NCBI RefSeq assembly: GCF_000143415.4
Contig: NW_003314330.1
Span: 836,089 to 900,088, forward strand
Source: Selaginella moellendorffii
Taxonomy: Eukaryota; Plantae; Lycopodiophyta
Direction of reading: 5' to 3'
Length of the DNA stretch: 64,000 nucleotides
A program made the position numbers and the translations under genes. This document shows positions 3,841-49,326 of the stretch, in pieces. Each line of letters opens with the position of its first letter. Position 1 is the first letter of the stretch. Under the pieces are notes generated by a model, which worked only from the letters and a program-made list of their open reading frames with translations, had not been told where the DNA came from and did not search any database.

Positions 3841-4288
3841 TTACCTCATTTAGGAGATTGAATGGTTAATACATCCAAATATGGTGTAAACAACTAAAAA
3901 TAATTTAAAAGCAATGACTTTTTGGTGTATAATGATCATTTCTAGAAATTTCCCTATGATTTATAGATGTTCTGAAGTGCTTTAGAGTGCTAGGTGCAGA
4001 GATCTCTCGCAGGCCATAGATGCCTACACTAGAAATATCTAAAATACAGAGCTAGTAACTGGAGCAATAATTCAAAGAGCAAACAAAAAGTGTAGAGCAA
4101 TGAAGTAAAGGGAGAGTTTTTGAGGAAGTTGCTAATTGGCAACACAAAGCCCTATAAGGACAAGTTTGACTATTGCTTTGTTGTATAGCATATACCAAGC
4201 ATTAGAAATAGAAGCAAGCAAGATGTAATTAACCATCTTGATAGTTAGTTTGGCTTTAACAACATATAAAATATTATATTCTTCTTAG

Positions 4289-5234
4289 TTTTTGAATTGT
4301 TGCATCCATCATCTCAATTCACAATGTCCTAGTGGTTATAAATGTAAGAAATATGTTTGCAAAAGAACATGCTTTCCAGGTAAGTTTTTATTTTTATCTT
4401 AAATTTAAGTAATTTTTCAACAGGTGATGCAGTATTACAACTTTATAATGGAAATAAAAAACAAATGAGAAATATCTCTATAGGAGATAAGGTTTTCACT
4501 TAAAATCATTTTCATCTTTTTGTATATAATATTAAATTTTAAGTTCTTTTATAGGTTGCAGTTCGAACTAAAAATGGTGAAGTACATTATTCTGATATAT
4601 ATGCTTTTGGGCATCAAGATTATGATACTTATGAGAATTTTATTCATATTGATATTGAAAATAATAAAAGTATTGAATTATCCCCTTTTCATTTTATACC
4701 AATAGTATCAAAAACAGGTAAATGTGATGTAAATAAAATTTTAAATTACTCAATTAAATTTTAGGCTCAATCATCTATAAGTATGCTGATGATATTACTA
4801 AAAATGATTTATTACTATCTTTAGATGAAATTTTGGGAAAAGTTCTAACTTATAATATAACTGGTAAGTAATATAAGTAAGTATTTTAACTCAATATTTT
4901 TACTTTTATAGGTTTTTATACTTTAAAAAAGCATGGACTTTATAACCCATTTACACTATTTGGGGATTTAATTGTTAATGATATTATTGTATCACCTCAT
5001 AGTGATTGGTTTTTAGATGATTTATTTAATTTTTTTAAGCTAAGTTACATATTACCTTATGTATATCATATTATCTTATTTCCTATTCAAGTTTTATACA
5101 TGAATTTAAATTATAAAGTTTATCTTTATTTGTATAAATATTTTACAAGGAACACATTAATGATTAACCATATAATTGAAGTGGGAATATTATGGACATT
5201 TATCTATAAAATAAAACATTTCATTAAAGAATAA
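4289..5234 (+). pseudogene. Hog (Hint + SRR-like) gene copy A; exons 2-5 open, exon 1 lacks in-frame ATG
   Basis: Exons ?-4379, 4424-4491, 4555-4717, 4765-4863, 4912-5234 with GT-AG introns; translates ..NSQCPSGYKCKKYVCKRT|CFPGDAVLQLYNGNKKQMRNISIGDKV..ELSPFHF..GLYNPFTLFGDLIVNDIIVSPHS..; in-frame TAG at 4286-4288. Confidence 0.8.
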
Positions 5235-5427
5235 TATTTTGGCATTGTGAGTGCTTTGAACAGCATAAGAATACTCAAAATTATATAAATAAATTTGACT
5301 ATAATAAAAATTTATTACTTTGAATAAAACAAATAATTAAAAGTCAATATTTTAAAACTTAATCTATATTTTTAGGGCAAAAGCCTCTATTAAAAATGTA
5401 GTTATCTAACTAACCATTTTGTTGGAG

Positions 5428-8226: not shown

Positions 8227-10359
8227 ATGGCCGGGGTGGGAAGAACAGGAAATTCATCCAAGAACAGGGAGATAGTTGTGAGATTCCAAGACGCTGGATC
8301 CAAGCCCAGCGTGGCGCTCATCCTCGCGGCTCTCAAGGCATGCAGCAAATCCAGGAATGAGAAACTGGGTAGAGAGATCCACGCCGCGGCTCGCGAGAGT
8401 GGATTCATGGCGAATTCTTTCGTGGTGAGCTCTCTCATCGACATGTACGCCAAGTGTGGGAGGATGGCCGACGCGAGCACTGTCTTCCACGGGATGGAGA
8501 TACACAGCATTGTCTCGTGGAATTCCCTCATCCTTGGCTACGCCGAGAATCACCAGCCAGAGAGAGCGCTCCAGCTCTACGATCGAATGCTGCGAGAGGA
8601 AAGCTTGGCTCCAAATCACGTCACGGATCTCGCTGCTCTCAAGGCCTGCGTGGTTCTCGCCAGGGAAGAAGACCCGCAGATCATCCATGGCCAGCCAGTG
8701 AGGATGAAAACTCTGGAGATAGTGATGAGGATCCACTCTCGAGCTGCTAGAGCTGGATCAAGCGGGCAAGAAGAACTCCACATCTTCCTCGCCAACTTTT
8801 TGGTGGACGTTTACTCGAGGTGTGGCAGCGCGGGTGATTCTCGACGAGTTTTCGATCGGATCCAACACCGCAGCGTGGTTTCCTGGACCTCGATGATTCT
8901 CGGCTATGCTGACAACCATCGCGGAGAGCTGGGCTTGGAGCTCTTCGAAGAGATGTGTCGCGCCGGCTGCTCGCAAAACCAAGTAACTTTCATCGCTGCG
9001 TTGAAAGCCTGCTCGAGCATGGCGGAGAGAGATCCCGGCGCGCTCGTCCACGGCAAGCTTGTCAAGCTCCAGGCCTTGGAAACTGGGATGAGTCTCCACT
9101 CTCGAGCCGAAGCAGCGGGACTTTCCGAGGACTCGGTGGTGGCCAACACTTTGATCGACATGTACGCGAAGTGTGGAAGCATGGAGGATTCACGCAGAGT
9201 TTTCGACGCCACGCCGAGGAAGTGTGTCATCTCCTGGACCGGGACGATCATGGGGTATGCTCTAAACGGTGACGGCGAGGTAGCTCTCGAGTTCTTCCGG
9301 CAAATGGACGATCATCAGTGCCAGCCGAATTACGTCACAGTTCTCGCTGCGATCAAGGCCTGTGTGTCTTTGGCGGAGAATGAGGCCGGGACGATGATCT
9401 TGGGCAGGATGGTGAAGACGAGTTCGTTGGAGATCGGACGAACTCTACACCGGCAAGCTCGAGAAAACGGTCACGAGAAAGAGATCTTCGTCGTCAACGC
9501 TCTCATCGACATGTACTCCAAGTGTGGCAGCCTCGAGGACGCGTTTACGATGTTTTGGAGCATCCATAGGCGAGATTCGGTATCTTGGAGCTCGATCATC
9601 CAGGCCTGTGCTGACAATGGCGAGGACGAGCAAGCGCTCCATCTCTTCTCGACGATCCAGCGAGAGAAGAAAGTTGTGAGCCCCGCGATCTTTGTGGCGG
9701 CTCTAAAGTCCTGTGGAAATCTGGGAGCTCTCGAGCGCGGAAGAGCTCTCGAGCTAGAAATAACAAACGCGGGCCTCGCGAGAAATCTCATGGTGGCAAA
9801 CTCTCTCGTTGGGGTGTACGGTCGGTGTGGCAGTACGGCCGACGCCCAGCGCGTGTTCGATTCCCTTCCGCCCCACTGCCGCGACCTGGTGACGTGGAAT
9901 GCTCTCGTGGACGCGTACGGCCGCCACGGCGACACGGCCCAAGTAATGTCCATGTTTCACGCGATGCAGCACAGCCACGACCGTACGCTGTGGCCAAATT
10001 CCGTAACCTTCTTGCTTGCCTTGAGCGCTTGCTGCCATGCTGGCCTTGTGGACGAGGGCAAGACGCTCCTGGCCGCGATGATTCAAGAGAATCGAGTGAT
10101 TCCGTCGATCAAGCACTATACCTGCGTAATCGACCTGCTGGGCCGAGCTAATCGCCTGGACGAGGCCGTGGAATTGGTGGAGCGATTGCCCTTCGAGGCG
10201 GATGCGGTGATTTGGACGAGTTTGATGGATGCCGCGCACAAATTTGGGGACGATCGCGTTGGAAGGAAAGCATTCGATGCCGTGGCGAAGCTGGAGGCGC
10301 GATCGGCAGCGTACGTGATGATGTCCAACATCGTAGGAGCGGCAGCGCAAGAGCCCTAA
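8227..10359 (+). CDS. PLS-class PPR protein with E domain
   Basis: 710-aa ORF; repeated SLIDMYAKCG/VSWNSLI motifs; ends KHYTCVIDLLGRA..LPFEADAVIW..AAYVMMSNI; no DYW domain. Confidence 0.9.
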   Translation: MAGVGRTGNSSKNREIVVRFQDAGSKPSVALILAALKACSKSRNEKLGREIHAAARESGFMANSFVVSSLIDMYAKCGRMADASTVFHGMEIHSIVSWNSLILGYAENHQPERALQLYDRMLREESLAPNHVTDLAALKACVVLAREEDPQIIHGQPVRMKTLEIVMRIHSRAARAGSSGQEELHIFLANFLVDVYSRCGSAGDSRRVFDRIQHRSVVSWTSMILGYADNHRGELGLELFEEMCRAGCSQNQVTFIAALKACSSMAERDPGALVHGKLVKLQALETGMSLHSRAEAAGLSEDSVVANTLIDMYAKCGSMEDSRRVFDATPRKCVISWTGTIMGYALNGDGEVALEFFRQMDDHQCQPNYVTVLAAIKACVSLAENEAGTMILGRMVKTSSLEIGRTLHRQARENGHEKEIFVVNALIDMYSKCGSLEDAFTMFWSIHRRDSVSWSSIIQACADNGEDEQALHLFSTIQREKKVVSPAIFVAALKSCGNLGALERGRALELEITNAGLARNLMVANSLVGVYGRCGSTADAQRVFDSLPPHCRDLVTWNALVDAYGRHGDTAQVMSMFHAMQHSHDRTLWPNSVTFLLALSACCHAGLVDEGKTLLAAMIQENRVIPSIKHYTCVIDLLGRANRLDEAVELVERLPFEADAVIWTSLMDAAHKFGDDRVGRKAFDAVAKLEARSAAYVMMSNIVGAAAQEP

Positions 10360-13099: not shown

Positions 13100-14320
13100 G
13101 TACTGTAAATTCATAATTTTGTAGTTTGAAAAGTGGTATGAAAAGCTGTTTCCCAAATAATTTCTAAATCTCGTTTTAAATTTAAATACTTTTTCTAAGC
13201 GTGTGATGTAGTATTACAGCTGTATAATGGTGATAAAAAACAAATAAGTTCAAGTTTTATATGCTCTTATATAAATTATATACTATTTAATATTTCCAGT
13301 AGGTTGTACTTATGTACACTAATAGGTTGTACTTCAAACTAAAAATAGTGAAGCTCATTACTATGATATATATACTTTGGGTATTAAGATCCTAATGTTT
13401 ATGATAAGGTAAAACAAGTAAAAGTTTCAATTGAATTTTTTATTTGGCAGATATTCACAGAATATTATTATTATTTTATGGTGGGGATTTTGGCTTAAAA
13501 TCATTTTATAGTGTTTATAAACAAATACAACACCACATTCAATGGGGGCAGGGGGGAGGCCTAACAGCTCATCTAAATGAAAATGTGGTAAATCTAGTTG
13601 CTATAAACCTGGGCCAGGGCATTGAGATGGAGCAGCTGTTTGCAGGGAATAAATGCATGCTATGCACCTTTGTATTATGTAGGTGAATTTGAGTGCTTGA
13701 TTGTCAGATGGTACAGGATAGTGGGAAGAAGAATAGAATGAATATTGGGATAAGGGATCCTTGTCCTCGCAGCAGATGCTCAATTGAGCAAAAATTGGAT
13801 GCCAGTGGATCCATCATGCAAATGGTGCTGTCTCTCTAGCACATGATGAGAGGTATGTGGATTATATTGAGCAGCTCCTGGGTCAAAAATCTAAAGGGTT
13901 GTTGCTATGCTGTCCAGGAAAGAACCAGTTTTGACAAAGAATGGTTTGGGCATAACTTGTTGAAGAAAAATCCAATTATCACTAGTATATGTGCTCCTTT
14001 TTGTTGTTGAGAGGCAGCAATGATTCAACATTGCCAACTTGACACAAGAGGAAAGATGATGGGCATCTAGTTGGTGGGGAAGGGACTACAGGGGTGGAGG
14101 TCAGACTTAAAATTCTATATTATTTATAAATTAATTCTAAAATTTAAAAAAAATTCAAAAATATTAATTTAGAACTTTATAAATGATGTTTTGCTATTTT
14201 TACTGGGAAAATTTTTGCTTATAATATAACAGGCAAAAATGGACTTTTTTAATACTTCTTTTGTGTTAAACTTTGAATTGTATGTATTTACATTTTACAA
14301 AAGCTTGAACTTAACAACCT
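13100..14320 (+). pseudogene. Hog gene copy B, decayed and interrupted by a LINE-like fragment
   Basis: CTVNS* then KSCFP (13141-13155), DVVLQLYNGDKKQI, VVLQTKNSEAHYYDIY; exon 4/5 remnants at ~14180-14320. Confidence 0.7.
13540..14100 (+). mobile_element. Probable LINE 3' fragment (zf-RVT-like) inside Hog copy B
   Basis: GC-richer insert; ~13755-13830 translates ILVLAADAQLSKNWMPVDPSCKWCC, resembling the LINE ORF2 C-terminal zinc finger. Confidence 0.4.
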
Positions 14321-14328
14321 TCTTAAAC

Positions 14329-14770
14329 AGGTGATGCAATAATGGCAATAAAGGAAATAAAAAGAAAATAATATCAAAGATAAGGTTTATTAACTTTTTT
14401 GGGTATATTAGAACTTAATCTCTTATAGTAGTTGCAATTTGAAATTCAAATACTACAAGGTCAAATAGATTATTCTGATATATATGATTTCAGACATCAT
14501 AGATATTTTATTTATATTAACATTGAAAGTATAAAAGTGTTATTTTCATTTTATAATTTCATAAACATGTAAATTTCTTATTTAATTTTTATATAAAATC
14601 ATCTATAAATATGCTATTGATATTACTATGATGTATTAGTTTTTTTAGAATCAGGAAAAGTTTTATCCTATAATGTAACTGGTAAGAAAATATTTAATCT
14701 ATCAATTTCAACAAAAACATAGACTTTATAGCCCATTGACATTTAATTGTTAATGATATTGTTGAATCTG
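14329..14770 (+). pseudogene. Hog gene copy C, decayed (exons 2-5 remnants)
   Basis: cag|gtgatgcaat..gataag|gttt, tattctgatatatatg, atctataaatatgctattgatattac, ttaattgttaatgatattgtt are collinear with the intact copy; deletions and frameshifts. Confidence 0.75.
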
Positions 14771-15270
14771 CTTTCATCTTTACTTTTGTATATTTTTCTC
14801 CTTCAATCAAACTTCCAGCATGTAAAGTAAATAATAAAAGTATTATCTTTACAATAAACCAACTCAAACACTGAAATACCACAGAGATCTTTGGACCCGC
14901 AGTTTACAATAAATTGTCAACCTGGAGGTGGCGTTGAAGCGAACCGTACAGCATTGAAGCGAACAAAAGGAGCGCTGTTACAGCATAACAAACGGCCCCG
15001 GCAACAACATATGTGAGGGAGACACCGGAGAGCCAGCTGAGGAGCAGCACCGGCGGAGGACAATCAGCACAATGAGGCAGCAGCAAAGAGGGCATCACAG
15101 CGACCGCGCGGAGGAGGAAATGGTGGCCAAGATCAAGCATTTTTTAACCCATCTGTCACAAACAGAATAGAACTAAAGTTTTGACCTGAGGATCTCTCTG
15201 ATTTTTTGTTTAAACCATTAAATTTGAAACTTACAACGGTACAACAAATATGCTTGTGGAGGGTTTAGCT

Positions 15271-16322
15271 ATGGTGTCTTATGAGGAGGAACGACGGCGA
15301 CGGGTAGAGGAGAACAAGAAGCGATTGAAGGTAAGCCACTTTCCTAGCTTGGCCATGGACCAAGCCATAAAAGAAAATCCTCTTTCACTGCTGCTTGCAG
15401 GAACTGGGTATAGCGGAGATCAGCAAGGAGATCGCCCAGCAGACCACACAAAGGGCTTCCAAGAACCAAGTAAGCTTCACAAAACTCGCTGCTTCTAGGC
15501 CATTTCCCACATCGATTGATCCAGGCGAGGAAACGTTGCTCAAGGTCAGCTGAGAAATCCGTCTTGTTTGTACGGAGGTCTTCTCGAGTCTCATCGAATC
15601 CTCGTCCAAACTACAAACTGGTAGAATAGTATCTCTCGTCTTCCTTTCCAAGATAATCTGTTGTTCTTGGATCACAGGATGACGAGCCCCGTCTGCCTCG
15701 AAGAAGGTATGTCTCCCACGAGCTCTAGAAATTTTCTAAGACGTTTCTCGCAGTTCTGGGCGATCGTCTCGAATATCTCCAACCAGCTTTTGCTCACAGG
15801 AGGACAGAATGGCAGCGATTGAGGCCGCGGAAAAGATCCAGCAAAGTTTAGATCGTCCTTCCACCGTCAAGACGATGCTCCAGTCCCACGTCTCTGGAGG
15901 ATTCTGGCTGGTAAATCTCCTGTTTGAGCATGCTAGCGAAAGATTAACAAGAAAGAGATCTTCTTGCAGAGCTTACCACTCTCATTTGCGAAGAAACACT
16001 TGCCAAAGAAGGACACGATGATCACCCTCGAAGACAGCGACGGGCAGGAGTCCGAGTCCTTTTATTTGGCGTACAAGAACGGACTTAGCGGCGGATGGCG
16101 TGGTTTCTCCATTGATCACAAGCTGCAAGACGGCGATGCTCTCGTCTTCGAGCTCATGGAACCTACACGTCTCAAGGTCAGTTCATAGAAGGCGAAATGA
16201 GAAAACTTCTTACAGTGGCTTTGTCTACACAGGTTCACATTTTTCGAGCTGCCGACTACCAAAGGATTCAAGGCAAAAGCATCACAGATAAGGCACAGCT
16301 TGCAAAAAGGAGCCGCAGGTAG
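15271..16322 (+). CDS. REM-type B3 DNA-binding domain protein, multi-exon
   Basis: MVSYEEERRRRVEENKKRLKELGI; KTMLQSHVSGGFWLSLP..GLSGGWRGFSIDHKLQDGDALVFEL..VHIFR. Confidence 0.88.
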
Positions 16323-16525
16323 ACTAGAAAGATGACAATGTTTGCTCTTTACAGCTAGTTCTTGTCATTACATCTATCAATGCAAAGAAAAGGAAATCAA
16401 GCACAAAATCAATGCAATACATAAAAAGCTAGCAGAAAAATCATTATATTTAAGAAACAAAGAGAAATTATTTTTGTTTATTACGAACAGAATATTATTC
16501 TTTTAATATTTATAGTTTTATATTT

Positions 16526-17545
16526 TTAGTTTAATACTTTTGTTTTCCAAATGAGTTTCCACAATATTCCAGCTCCAATAATATAGTTAATTATTATTTC
16601 ATTACTATTAAGAAAATGATATAACTGTAGGTAAGATTTAGTATTTAGAGTCTTATATAAAACTCGAATAGGATATAAAATAATTTGATATACATAAGGT
16701 AATAAAGAGCTTAATTTGAAAAACTTAAATATATTATCTAAAAACCAATCACTATGTGGTGATACAATAATATCATTAACAATTAAATCTCCAAATAATG
16801 TAAATGGGTTATAAAGTCCATGCTTTTGTATAATGTAAATACCTAAAATTTACAAATAAATCAAAATAAACTTATTCCAATTTAATTACTTACTTGTTAT
16901 ATTATAAGTTAAAACTTTTCCTAATTTTTCATTTAAAGATAACAATATATCATTTGTGGTAATGTCAATTGCATATTTATAGATTATTGAACCTACACAA
17001 GAATTGAATAGAAATAAATTTCTATTTTAAACACTTTTACCTTTTTTGGATACAATTGGAATAAAGTGTAAAGGGGACAATTCAATACTTTTATTATTTT
17101 CAATATTAATATGAATAAAGTCTTCATAAGCATTGGGATCTTGATGGCCAAAAGCATATATATCAGAAAAGTCTATTTCACCATTTTTAGTTTGAATTGC
17201 AACCTGTTAGAAAAAGCTAATGTCAATTTTCATACACATAGAAAAAGTATAAATATATAAAACTGTAAACCTTATCTCCAATAGCTATATCTTGAATTTT
17301 CTTTTTATTCCCATTAATAAGTGTTAATATTGCATCACCTGTTAGCAAAGAAAGATTAATTTAAGTTAACAACAAGATTAATAGAACAACATTAAGAAAT
17401 TACCTGGAAAACACTTCTTTGATTTTTTGCAAATTTGATTTACACATTTATAACCGCTAAGACATTGTGAATTTATAAGACATGAATAAATTTGATTTGG
17501 TAAAACATAAAGCACAAACAAAATATAAAATATAAAACTTTTCAT
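16526..17545 (-). CDS. Secreted Hedgehog-like Hog precursor: signal peptide + 4-Cys micro-peptide + Hint + SRR-like tail (262 aa, 5 exons)
   Basis: Exons 17545-17404, 17338-17271, 17203-17041, 16992-16894, 16842-16526 (789 nt, all GT-AG, no internal stop). MKSFIFYILFVLYVLPNQIYS-CLINSQCLSGYKCVNQICKKSKK|CFPGDAILTLINGNKKKIQDIAIGDKV..SDIYAFGHQD..IELSPLHFI..YAIDITTND..GLYNPFTLFGDLIVNDIIVSPHS..LLPYVYQIILYPIRVLY. Confidence 0.88.
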
Positions 17546-17571
17546 TTTGAAGATATGTTATTAGGAAATAA

Positions 17572-18412
17572 AGATGTCAAGCTCTTTAAATTTAAGCCAC
17601 TCATGTGCACCAATCCAAACGTGACAACAAAAATATAATGCCATATGGCCAAACCATGTACTCCTAAAATATAAAACATTAAAGATAAGGGTTTAACAGC
17701 TATTATCTCTTTGTCTACTTTGATAAGTGAGCCACTTTATGTCTCTATTATAACTAGAATCCATAACTGTGTTATAGGACAAAGCAGCTTATGCTTCCAT
17801 CAATAGGTTAAAAACTCCAGTAAATATAACTAGAATCCATAGGTGTATTAGACGATGTCAAGGATTGAACTCCAGTAAAGTCAGGCTCTTTAAATTTAAA
17901 CCACCTATGTGCACCAATCCAAACGTTAGAACAAGAATGTAGTGTCATATAGCCAAACCATGTACCTATAAGACACAAAAAATAAAGGCTTAACAAATAC
18001 TATGTCTTATCTACTTAGAATCCACAAGAATGTAGTCTTAATGTGGCCAAACCATGTACTCCTAAAATATAAGACACAAAAGCTCAAGGCTTATGTCAAG
18101 GATTTAACTCTAGTTAAGTCAGGCTCTTTAAATTTAAGTCACCTATATGCACCAATTCAAACGTTATAACAAGAATGTAATGTTATATGCCAAACCATGT
18201 ACTCCTAAAATACAAGACACAAAAAATAAGGGCTTAACAGCTACTATTTCTTGTTTACTTTGATAGGTGAGCCACTTTATGTCTTTATTATAACTAGAAT
18301 CCACAAAAATATAGTGTCATGTGGCCAAACTATATACTCCTGAAATATACAACACAAAATATAAAGGCTTAACTTTAATAGGTGAGCCATTTTATATCCC
18401 TATTATAACTAA
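17572..18412. repeat. Complex tandem repeat array upstream of the Hog gene
   Basis: gctctttaaatttaa..gcaccaat.caaacg at ~17581, 17885 and 18123; ccaaac.at.ta..c.taa subunit at ~17649, 17953, 18047, 18189 and 18324. Confidence 0.8.
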
Positions 18413-19057
18413 AAAAACTAGGGCACATTAAAAACTCTCTTGAATTTAGATTTCACAAGGCTAACATGGATGCATTTGCAATCTTGAAGACATGGATCCT
18501 CCTGCCTTACGCACCAAGAACTCTTGATCATGGATAGGCTCATGAAAGCAGTTGCTAGAGAGAAATGTAATTCCCATCCTTCTGGACTAGAAACTCTTCC
18601 TTGTCACCAAAGAAAACGGTAGCACCAATAGATGAGAAATCCTGCCAACCTCCACTCCATCGACCCATTCTTCTGGATGAGATCAATTTTGATGCTGGCT
18701 TTCCACCAGATTAGAATCCACTCCACCACCAACATGAATTATTATCTCCTGTTCTGGAGGTGGTAGTCCACACGGACATTTTAAAAGTAGAATTTGAAAT
18801 TATCCACTTCATTTTCTATTAGAATTTATATGCCTTTCTATTACTGAACTTGATTTAATTCAATTTTTTCCTATAAATTGTAGATGCCGAGGGGCTGTTG
18901 GGAACTTGCATCCTTTAGGAATTTGAGAAGCCGTGGCTGAACTTGCTTTCCCATGGCCATAGCCATTTGACGTTGGACAAGGCCAGCCTGCGGCACCTTA
19001 GAAACAATGGAAAATCCACAGGAGAGCTCGGGTGCCAGTGCCCGGACAAATGCCGAA

Positions 19058-47202: not shown

Positions 47203-49326
47203 ATGAACGCTCCCGGCGTGGATGACTTTGCCCGCCTCGCTCGGTCGTGTGCAAGGAGCAAATCGCTTGAGGATGCACGGGAGCTGGATTGGAAGATCGC
47301 CCAGAGCGCGCACTCCGGCAACAGGTTCCTGGCGAATCTCGTCGTGGACATGTACGGCAAGTGTGGCAGCTTGCAAGACGCGAGGAATGCGTTTGCTCGG
47401 ATCAAAGATCCAAACGTTTACTCGTGGAACATCGTAATCGCAGCACATACCCAGAACGGGCAGCTGGATCACGCCCGTTTGCTGTTCGATCAGATGCCTC
47501 ACAAGGATATAGTCTCGTTCAACTGTATCATCGCTGCATATGCGAGAAAGGGCGACTTGCGGGAGGCGAGAAAGATCTTTGAGAAGATGACCGATCGAGA
47601 CACCGTGACTTGGAACACGATGCTTGCTGCTCATGCCCAAGGGGGGCATTTGCATGAGGCGAAGCTTTTGTTCGATCTTATGCCTTCCAAGAATGTGGTG
47701 TCTTGGAACGCGATGATCGGAGCTTACGCCGCGGCGGGACTGCTTGCCGAGGCGCGGCTCGTCTTCGATCGGATGCCCACCCGCGATGTGGTTTCGGGGA
47801 ACGCAATGATCGCCGCCTATGTCCACGGCAGCCAGATCCATGAAGCGCGACGGATCTTCGACTCCATGCCAGAGAGAAATGTGGTGGCCTGGACCGCGAT
47901 CATGGCTGGCTATGCCAATGCTGGCTACCTCGATTTCGCGAGGATCATCTTTGACAAGATACCCAACAAGAACATCGTCTCTTGGAACGCGATCATCGCC
48001 GCGTACATCCAGCACCACCGCTTGCTCGAAGCTCTTGCGATGTTCGACGGTATGCCACAGCGGGATGTTGCGTCGTGGAACACGATGATCGCGGGGCTTG
48101 CGCAGGCCGGGCGGATCGATCATGCGCGCCGGCTTTTCGATTCCATGCCCAAGCGTGATCTTGTGTCATGGAACACGATGGTGAGTGGCTATGCGGCGTT
48201 GGGCTTCTTGGGCGAAGCTAGAGCGATCTTTGAAAAGATGGTAGACAAGGACGTTGTGTCGTGGAACACGTTAATTGCGGCATATTCCCACAATGGTAAT
48301 GTACGTGAGGCAAAGATTCTCTTTGACAGAATGCCCGAGAGGGATAATCCGTCGTGGAATGCCATGCTTTCAGCATATGCCGGGTCTGGGCATCTGGAAG
48401 ATGCTAAGCGTTTGTTTGACAAGATGCCGGACAAGAATGTGGTATCTTACACGTCCATGGTAGCGGCTTACGGGAGCAATGGCTGCTTGAACGAAGCAAA
48501 GGAGATGTTTGATTCGATGGTGGAGAGAAACGTTGTGTCGTGGAATGCGATGATCGCGGCATTTAATCAAAATGGTGGTGCTCGAGAGGGGATCGCGCTG
48601 TTCAAGGTGATGGATCTCGAGGGGGTGGAGATGGACAAGATCTCCATAGTTTGTGCTCTTGAGGCTTGCGCCTTGGCCGTGTCGCTCGTCGATGGTGCTC
48701 GCGTCCACTCCAGCATTCTCGGAGGCAAGCTCGCCAGGGACTACGTCGTGCAGACCGCGCTCGTGAACATGTACGGCAAGTGTGGCAACCTGGTCGAAGC
48801 TCGAAGGATCTTCGACTCGATGAGCTTCAACTTCCAGGACTCGGTGCCTTGGAACTCCCTCATTGTGGCCTACAGCCAAAACGGCGAGGGCGACAAGGCT
48901 CTGGATCTGTTTGGAACGATGGTGCTGGATGGGATGATCCCGGACGAGATCACCTTCATGGGAGTCCTCAGCGTTTGCAGCCACGCGGGGCTTCTCGAGG
49001 AGGGTCTGCAATACTTCCGGACTCTGGGCGATCACGGGATCGTCCCGACTGTGGATCACTACAAGTGCGTGGTTGATCTGCTGGGACGCGCTGCGAAGCT
49101 GGAGGAAGCGTCGGGTCTCGTGGAAGCAATGCCGTATGAGCCCGACGAAGTTGCATGGATGACTCTCCTCAGCGCTTGCAAAGTTTACGACGATGACAAG
49201 ATTGGGATGCGAGCGGCGGAGGGGCTCGTGGAGATTGATCCAGAGACGGCGGCACCGTATGTGTTGCTGTCCAACATATACGTAGAAAGGAACAAAGGCC
49301 CGGTAGTCGGAGCAAAGAAAGGATGA
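47203..49326 (+). CDS. PLS-class PPR protein with SS-rich array and E domain
   Basis: 707-aa ORF; ends HYKCVVDLLGRA..MPYEPDEVAW..AAPYVLLSNIY; no DYW. Confidence 0.92.
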   Translation: MNAPGVDDFARLARSCARSKSLEDARELDWKIAQSAHSGNRFLANLVVDMYGKCGSLQDARNAFARIKDPNVYSWNIVIAAHTQNGQLDHARLLFDQMPHKDIVSFNCIIAAYARKGDLREARKIFEKMTDRDTVTWNTMLAAHAQGGHLHEAKLLFDLMPSKNVVSWNAMIGAYAAAGLLAEARLVFDRMPTRDVVSGNAMIAAYVHGSQIHEARRIFDSMPERNVVAWTAIMAGYANAGYLDFARIIFDKIPNKNIVSWNAIIAAYIQHHRLLEALAMFDGMPQRDVASWNTMIAGLAQAGRIDHARRLFDSMPKRDLVSWNTMVSGYAALGFLGEARAIFEKMVDKDVVSWNTLIAAYSHNGNVREAKILFDRMPERDNPSWNAMLSAYAGSGHLEDAKRLFDKMPDKNVVSYTSMVAAYGSNGCLNEAKEMFDSMVERNVVSWNAMIAAFNQNGGAREGIALFKVMDLEGVEMDKISIVCALEACALAVSLVDGARVHSSILGGKLARDYVVQTALVNMYGKCGNLVEARRIFDSMSFNFQDSVPWNSLIVAYSQNGEGDKALDLFGTMVLDGMIPDEITFMGVLSVCSHAGLLEEGLQYFRTLGDHGIVPTVDHYKCVVDLLGRAAKLEEASGLVEAMPYEPDEVAWMTLLSACKVYDDDKIGMRAAEGLVEIDPETAAPYVLLSNIYVERNKGPVVGAKKG

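Follow-up and report, generated by a model that had tools for sequence, protein, structure and literature searches.

In the window analyzed here, a 64,000-nucleotide stretch of the Selaginella moellendorffii genome, a five-exon gene encoding a Hog-domain protein of 262 amino acids (copy A) occupies positions 16526 to 17545 of the minus strand, with its ATG at 17545 and its stop codon at 16528-16526. Exon 1 (17404-17545, 142 nt) encodes the leader, a four-cysteine peptide, the residues CFP, and the first base of the ensuing Gly codon. Exon 2 (17271-17338, 68 nt) carries Hint block A (GDAILTL...IGDK), and exon 3 (17041-17203, 163 nt) contributes H90, which occupies the position of D46 in the animal Hedgehog domain Hh-C, together with the TxxH motif in the form S113-P-L-H116. 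The variable middle of the Hint module is encoded by exon 4 (16894-16992, 99 nt), and exon 5 (16526-16842, 317 nt) encodes the C-terminal Hint blocks GLYNPFTLFGDLIVND and VSPHSDWFLD, a conserved helical tail region (LPYVYQIILYPIRVLY), and the hydrophobic C terminus (IIGAGILWKLIW), after which comes the stop. The introns measure 65, 67, 48, and 51 nt, all four of them bounded by GT and AG, and an in-frame TAA was found five codons before the ATG in the reverse complement of 16450-17620. This model, rebuilt from the sequence, was identical in coordinates and protein to that put forward in a preliminary description of the locus, which had also remarked that the ORF track misses the gene; the largest piece of it lying within a single ORF amounts to 55 amino acids.

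The first 21 residues of the product (MKSFIFYILFVLYVLPNQIYS, encoded at 17483-17545 on the minus strand) form a predicted signal peptide, as indicated by their hydropathy (mean Kyte-Doolittle value of 2.1 over residues 1 to 15), a small residue at position -1, and the alignment of the leader with the leaders of paralogs. They are followed by a cationic peptide of 23 amino acids (residues 22 to 44; 17414-17482, minus strand), CLINSQCLSGYKCVNQICKKSKK, with four cysteines spaced C-x5-C-x5-C-x4-C, five lysines, and no acidic residues, which is the predicted released product. The next codon (17411-17413, minus strand) specifies C45, the catalytic cysteine equivalent to C1 of Hh-C, and cleavage is predicted to fall between K44 and C45. 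The motifs CFPGDA (residues 45 to 50), SPLH (113 to 116), GLYNP (166 to 170), and YPIRVLY (214 to 220) are embedded in a protein in which I, L, K, N, Y, and F together account for 58% of the residues. The hydrophobic leader, the cationic four-cysteine peptide, the CFPGDA beginning at C45, and the SPLH motif had all been listed in the preliminary description, and each was recovered here.

At the base composition of copy A, a random codon is a stop about 9% of the time, and the chance of a random 262-codon frame staying open in such DNA is ~2e-11, a figure that is weakened by the freedom available in choosing splice sites. It is therefore the homology extending across the exon junctions, and not the open-frame probability alone, that places the gene beyond chance.

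Several other Hog-related features were found in the same window. A sister paralog, copy B (4289-5234, plus strand), has internal exons of 68, 163, and 99 nt, identical to those of copy A, and the two copies share 74% amino acid identity in the Hog region. The leader region of copy B (approximately 4223-4288) contains two stop codons, suggesting that this copy is likely a pseudogene. Two degraded Hog fragments, both with broken frames and both on the plus strand, were located at 13130-13430 (equivalents of exons 2 and 3) and at 14200-14770 (equivalents of exons 2 to 5, with inverted-repeat arms matching copy A). Immediately upstream of copy A lies a direct-repeat array with units of 56-107 nt (17576-18421). 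The neighbor of copy A at 15200-16407 on the plus strand is an expressed B3-domain gene (E value of 4e-13 for the B3 domain), convergent with copy A, and genes for PPR, TBCC, and clathrin proteins also lie around the Hog copies. Recognizable ORFs were absent from the remaining AT-rich islands (37.2-38.2 kb and 61.8-63.4 kb), and a tblastn search of five loci revealed no extra AT-rich copies beside the annotated paralogs.

Homology and the Hint domain

When queried against the Pfam Hint profile PF01079, exon 3 aligned with profile positions 42-89 (E value of 8.2e-5, 22.7 bits) and exon 5 with positions 134-162 (E value of 1.2e-3, 18.9 bits); each score alone falls below the cut-off of 29.7 bits, but their rough sum lies above it and their order is collinear. 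The spliced protein aligned collinearly with database Hint proteins over residues 37-238, crossing all of the exon junctions and scoring up to 178 bits, the highest value being that with the plant Hint protein P0001 in a script comparison with HMMER-retrieved proteins. Scores with Selaginella paralogs ranged from 143 to 167 bits, and those paralogs themselves score 93-95 bits on PF01079. An HMMER search of 1.84 billion representatives with exon 5 returned 334 proteins at E<1e-3, the closest of them about 50-57% identical, with named relatives from S. moellendorffii, Diphasiastrum, Ceratodon, and Adiantum. Every relative scanned passed PF01079, with 76-115 bits, which together with the ordered matches of exons 3 and 5 upholds the Hint domain call made in the preliminary description. 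Among PDB sequences, exon 5 gave zero matches at E<=10.

A family profile built from 46 relatives and the exon pieces of copy A matched Drosophila Hh-C with an E value of 1.5e-31, human Shh with 1.4e-22, and inteins with 4e-5. For the comparison of folds, the AF2 model of the paralog P0151 (pLDDT of 84, and >90 through the Hint core) served as a proxy standing for the copy A family. This model superposed on Hh-C (6TYY and 1AT0) with a TM score of 0.85 and an rmsd of 2.3 Å, these being the best matches, ahead of BIL domains and inteins. Exon 3 of copy A itself aligned without gaps to residues 30-76 of 6TYY. All 17 of the near-invariant family residues are kept in copy A, and from the post-Hint motifs J and K (HSxWFLD, LPxxYQ, and PxR) it has H187-S188, D193, P206, Y209, P215, and R217. 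The four-cysteine peptide gave nothing but sub-threshold matches in Pfam, to the EB module (E value of 0.004) and to Dumpy; its four cysteines were also present in copy B, P0151, and P0014. Judged by its sequence, copy A is a member of the Hog family of land plants.

Hog genes had been reported in S. moellendorffii, S. lepidophylla, and Physcomitrella by Bürglin (2008, PMC2362128), consistent with the statement in the preliminary description that such genes exist outside animals. That study noted a convincing signal peptide in the plant Hog proteins and conservation of the region upstream, and motifs J and K were present with the motif-J cysteine replaced (PMC2362128). About 12 or more S. moellendorffii paralogs are annotated, under the names "warthog protein 4/6" in NCBI and "Hint domain-containing protein" in UniProt. 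One of these, P0151, has a signal peptide and a 31-residue four-cysteine stretch (C-x5-C-x9-C-x4-C) with a Gly end, followed by CFPGDA, and another, P0014 (SELMODRAFT_446381), which lies on the same genomic scaffold as copy A, has a 36-residue cysteine peptide. The suggestion that the system was undescribed in plants must therefore be withdrawn in view of the 2008 report (PMC2362128) and of the four-cysteine peptides in P0151 and P0014. The domain finding is not news in itself; copy A is a new, unannotated addition of one gene to a family that was already published in 2008 and annotated.

Origin, selection, and apparent silence of copy A

The coding sequence of copy A has a GC content of 23.6%, compared with 42-57% for most of the window. 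Its GC3 is 14% and its CpG o/e is 0.19 (0.08 in copy B), whereas the TBCC and PPR neighbors have GC3 values of 69-74% and a CpG o/e of ~1.1; P0151 is intermediate, with a GC3 of 45% and a CpG o/e of 0.49. Long-term cytosine methylation and deamination, as expected of silenced DNA, would produce the pattern observed in copy A.

A coding sequence of 24% GC inside a window of ~45% GC might alternatively be foreign DNA, arising as a contaminant, as an assembly chimera, or through gene transfer whose donor was an AT-rich organism or a giant virus. The phylogeny lends this some support, since in a tree of 60 Hog domains copies A and B came together with full support at the end of a long stem (0.9) and did not group with the GC-normal Selaginella clade. 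The pair was nevertheless placed within the land-plant clade, weakly beside Diphasiastrum, with its exact sister group left uncertain by the quick tree method and by composition bias. Introns 1, 2, and 4 of copy A (three of the four) match the host paralog P0151 in both position and phase, the introns at the P0151 locus lying at CFPG|GDA, at GDK|V, and at the codon after ..IT; the intron preceding exon 4 (17040-16993) is not found in P0151. The sizes of the introns also fit those of the host: reads over the B3 neighbor define eight joints with gaps of 47-133 nt, of which seven are GT..AG, and its constitutive introns measure 47-75 nt, indicating that the tiny introns of copy A are normal for this genome. 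Furthermore, the Hog copies sit among ordinary plant genes (B3, PPR, TBCC, and clathrin), and the annotated paralogs are already partly CpG depleted, so that there is a gradient of composition and no break. We consider a foreign origin exceedingly improbable, and the three intron positions in common with P0151, together with the tree, indicate that copy A is an old, divergent native paralog and not an import. As specific donors, a Dictyostelium-like, fungal, or giant-virus source, brought to mind by the 24% GC and the 48-67-nt introns, was rejected on the basis of the introns of the neighbor, the intron positions of P0151, and the tree.

The selection acting on copy A was assessed by comparison with copy B, from which it is separated by a synonymous divergence of 0.5-0.8. 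The dN/dS between the two copies was 0.22-0.33. With ten outgroups as reference, 25 derived residues were assigned to copy B and 12 to copy A (p 0.047), the changes in copy B including the replacement of Arg by Gln within P-x-R, and in the Hog-domain tree the tip branch of copy A measured 0.027 compared with 0.23 for copy B. As many as 99 of the 262 codons of copy A are one step from a stop, and in a neutral simulation 4.8% of trials retained an open frame when divergence had reached 5%, compared with 0.3% at 10%. The low dN/dS, the smaller number of derived residues, and the improbability of the frame surviving under neutrality indicate that copy A has been under purifying selection, at least until recently.

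No RNA reads were found on copy A in three RNA-seq runs, ~12% of each of which was read, whereas the B3 gene, a positive control ~120 bp away, was covered to a depth of 20-38. When the reads of these runs and one contig set were aligned to 14800-18800, the spliced transcript implied by the proposed gene model was likewise not seen over the copy A junctions. Copy A words were absent from 19 further RNA contig sets, and the sole set in which they occurred, X1, contained a contig of 364 nt that is unspliced and whose library type is not specified. HMMER and word-indexed searches with exon 5 found no copy A-like protein among 15 billion predicted proteins. Copy A appears to be transcriptionally silent in the RNA data examined, so any activity would be stage or stress specific.

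These observations could also be explained if copy A were a silenced relic in methylated, AT-decaying chromatin, its disabling mutation still to come and its dN/dS a record of past selection. Such an account would accommodate the lack of RNA reads and spliced contigs, the lack of a matching predicted protein in the databases searched, the CpG o/e of 0.19 and GC3 of 14%, the direct-repeat array upstream, and the fact that copy B and two nearby Hog fragments are already broken. We nonetheless regard it as unlikely, given that with 99 of 262 codons one step from a stop the frame had a survival probability of 0.048 at 5% neutral divergence, that all eight splice-site dinucleotides are intact, and that 17 of 17 invariant residues are retained. 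The 12 derived residues against 25 in copy B (p 0.047) and the tip branch of 0.027 against 0.23 point in the same direction, although a very recent loss of constraint would still be compatible with them. Our preferred reading, to which we assign a probability of about 60%, is that copy A is a native, intact, unannotated Hog paralog of the kind found in non-seed land plants, lying in a small, AT-rich, CpG-depleted Hog cluster, and that it is a candidate peptide-releasing protein. Copy A is notable mainly for being intact yet silenced looking: an intact and constrained frame at such a GC3 and CpG o/e, unseen by gene finders and by RNA-seq, is odd, and it may point to a hidden gene class in the AT-rich islands of the S. 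moellendorffii genome.

Catalytic residues and proposed fate of the four-cysteine peptide

C45, S113, and H116 of copy A correspond to C1, T69, and H72 of Hh-C, with spacings of +68 and +71 that are identical to those of Drosophila Hh-C. The first of these positions is Cys, the second Thr or Ser, and the third His in all 46 relatives. In Hedgehog, the N-to-S acyl shift is the work of these residues; the H329A mutant is inactive and the T326A mutant is much reduced in both DTT- and cholesterol-driven reactions (PMC9163320). At position -1 copy A has Lys, an uncommon residue in a family where Gly or Ser mostly occurs at this site. The position of D46, the base that activates cholesterol in Hedgehog, is occupied by His in 46 of 46 relatives and by H90 in copy A. 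An engineered D46H form of Hh-C is active and accepts a wider range of sterols (Zhao 2019, as reviewed in PMC9163320), and since activity is retained in that mutant, H90 is compatible with transfer to a hydroxyl. The position of C143, which is reported to be required for Hedgehog autoprocessing and to form a branched intermediate (PMC12054796), is Pro186 in copy A and Cys in only 7 of the 46 relatives.

The stretch of approximately 50 residues that follows the Hint core ranks with the best conserved parts of the family (HSxWFLD, LPxxYQ, and PxR), and in the AF2 model of P0151 this tail is predicted to be helical with a terminal hydrophobic helix. Copies A and B are without 12 tail residues that are present in other members. 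The preliminary description had matched copy A both to the Hint blocks of Hedgehog and to its sterol-recognition region (SRR). The Hint part was borne out by PF01079 and the family profile, but the sterol-recognition part was not: when the profile was aligned with full-length Hh and Shh, the match extended no further than Hh-C residue ~143, and the resemblance of the copy A tail to the Hedgehog SRR is limited to position, helicity, and the P-x-R motif.

If translated, the copy A protein would enter the ER through its leader, and the peptide, on this route to secretion, would be expected to form disulfides. Next, through an N-to-S acyl shift assisted by S113 and H116, the Hint module would turn the peptide bond between K44 and C45 into a thioester, and resolution of the thioester would free the 23-residue cationic four-cysteine peptide from a Hog domain bearing a hydrophobic C-terminal helix. 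Given expression, self-cleavage at K44|C45 is quite likely; the prediction is grounded in the match of C45, S113, and H116 to the catalytic residues of Hh-C, with the Lys at -1 as an unusual element. As to how the thioester would be resolved, water or some other route is the reasonably likely answer. Resolution by a lipid or sterol hydroxyl is a speculative and tentative proposal, suggested by the invariant His at the general-base position and by the strongly conserved helical tail.

It is quite possible that an active copy A gene uses its Hog domain as a release module only, with the thioester hydrolyzed or otherwise resolved and the peptide left with a free C terminus and no lipid. Conservation extends to the residues that carry out the first step but not to the Hedgehog-specific C143, which is reported to be needed in Hedgehog itself (PMC12054796); no similarity to the Hedgehog SRR was detected; and BIL domains and other Hint relatives are among the fold matches. 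Plain hydrolysis would, however, make it hard to explain the ~50 highly conserved post-Hint residues, and the predicted helical tail with its terminal hydrophobic helix also speaks against mere release, as does the invariant general-base His, given that D46H Hh-C performs sterol transfer (PMC9163320). An extended form of the lipid proposal, which we consider improbable, is that Hog domains of non-seed land plants join the C terminus of small secreted cargo to a lipid of the membrane, which might be a phytosterol, and that copy A belongs to a hidden, AT-rich, normally silenced subfamily. The cargo would include cationic peptides with four cysteines as well as Pro-rich stretches and modules of the hevein and lectin types, and selection would keep the copy A subfamily intact, its expression being confined to one particular stage or to times of attack. 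If this were true, Hog lipidation would parallel Hedgehog cholesterolysis in plants and provide a second option besides GPI anchoring, and a broader range of sterols would be in keeping with the His that naturally occupies the general-base position.

With its invariant His, its loss of Cys143, and its conserved tail, the plant Hog family, still biochemically uncharacterized, is a natural system in which to ask on which elements of Hedgehog chemistry lipid transfer depends, and a cargo of 23 amino acids is of an ideal size for mass spectrometry. The expressed paralogs P0151 or P0014 would be a better entry point for such work than the silent copy A.

Comparison with known systems

The small cysteine-rich plant peptides of the NCR or late-nodulin type resemble copy A in that a signal peptide, a predicted one in copy A, is followed by a short cationic four-cysteine peptide. 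They are released by signal peptidase alone, without a Hint fusion, and have no significant homology to copy A; the match of P0151 to Pfam Nodulin_late is sub-threshold, with an E value of 0.0019 and 18.9 bits against a cut-off of 30.4. Inteins and BIL domains share with the copy A family the fold of the Hint superfamily and the first chemical step. The match of the family profile to inteins is far weaker than that to Hh-C (E value of 4e-5 versus 1.5e-31), and copy A, unlike an intein, has no C-extein to ligate, the protein ending after its helical tail.

In the nematode warthog, groundhog, and quahog proteins, as predicted for copy A, the Hog domain is fused to small secreted cysteine-containing N-terminal modules that are unrelated to Hedge. 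The adduct of the nematode Hedgehog-related proteins is unknown, and their corresponding region has been termed the "ARR" (PMC2362128). The "warthog" label of the Selaginella proteins reflects Hint similarity alone, as Pfam shows nothing but Hint in them. With animal Hedgehog (Hh-C, 1AT0 and 6TYY), the copy A family has in common the Hint fold, the catalytic Cys, and the equally spaced T/SxxH, and passage of the precursor through the secretory pathway and cleavage before the Cys would be expected in copy A as well. In contrast to Hedgehog, copy A has no Hedge signaling domain, its cargo being 23 residues long; the position of Asp46 is naturally taken by the His that was engineered into D46H; and Pro186 stands where the SCYA motif has Cys143. 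The copy A family also has an extra terminal hydrophobic helix and no detectable SRR similarity.

The plant proteins pSm Hog, pSl Hog, and pPp Hog and the annotated Selaginella paralogs are built like copy A, with a signal peptide, a predicted one in copy A, and a short upstream module. Copy A differs from the annotated paralogs in several respects: identity is just about 40-50%, the GC content of the coding sequence is 24% versus 45%, the CpG o/e is 0.19 versus 0.49, and copy A has one more intron, a 12-residue deletion in the tail, and Lys at -1. What copy A and these paralogs have in common is the CFPGDA start, the His at the D46 position, T/SxxH, and GLYNP, followed by HSxWFLD, LPxxYQ, PxR, and a hydrophobic C terminus.

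Base composition and sequence coverage of the Hog copies

Both Hog copies in the window, copy A (the unannotated five-exon gene at 16526-17545, minus strand) and copy B (its sister paralog and likely pseudogene at 4289-5234, plus strand), are AT-rich and extremely depleted in CpG, with observed/expected ratios of 0.19 for copy A (region 16400-17600) and 0.08 for copy B (region 4250-5300). The GC3 of copy A is 14%. The genes adjoining the Hog copies have a GC3 of ~70% and a CpG ratio of ~1.1, and the composition of P0151, an annotated S. moellendorffii Hog paralog with a four-Cys peptide, lies between these neighbors and copies A and B. The combination of CpG depletion and AT richness looks like methylation-driven decay of a gene whose frame is still kept.

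The only public contig containing part of copy A came from a single sequencing run, X1 (depth of 2, 17039-17402), and was colinear with the genome across introns 1 and 2. The two contig ends lie 1 to 2 nt within introns 1 and 3, which is probably a coincidence in a low-coverage DNA run.

Leader, four-Cys peptide and cargo

The leader and four-Cys peptide of copy A (17405-17545, minus strand) resembled the EB module with an E value of 0.004, and the corresponding region of P0151 (aa 4 to 50) resembled the Late nodulin/NCR peptides with an E value of 0.0019. Both matches scored below the cut-off for significance, and these sequence resemblances are leads only. In six relatives encoded outside the window (P0016, P0040, P0079, P0082, P0020 and P0155), the cargo ahead of the plant-type Hog domain was very varied, comprising a hevein chitin-binding module, a B-lectin, a ConA-like domain, an M35 aspzincin peptidase, Pro-rich repeats or no cargo at all. 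This diversity suggests that the plant-type Hog domain is a general module to release or anchor extracellular proteins.

Genomic surroundings and paralog loci

Immediately upstream of copy A is a direct-repeat array (17576-18421; units of 56 to 107 nt, three to five copies each, 67 to 93% alike), which may be a satellite or a decayed small element. The B3-domain gene at 15200-16407 (plus strand) is expressed, with eight joints supported by reads; among these is an alternative splice at 15449/15469-15525 that adds 17 nucleotides. SNPs in this gene, present in 20 to 50% of reads, would fit either two haplotypes or a different accession. The 64-kb window also contains three long, intronless PPR genes on the plus strand (8227-10359, 33870-36767 and 47203-49326), one of which has an E motif.

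Annotated Hog paralogs occur in tandem at L001 (two), L003 (three) and L004 (two). Intron 2 of P0151, at L001, has an apparent GC donor. The tandem pair at L001 (S. moellendorffii GL377597.1) adjoins a PPR gene, an arrangement also seen in the window.
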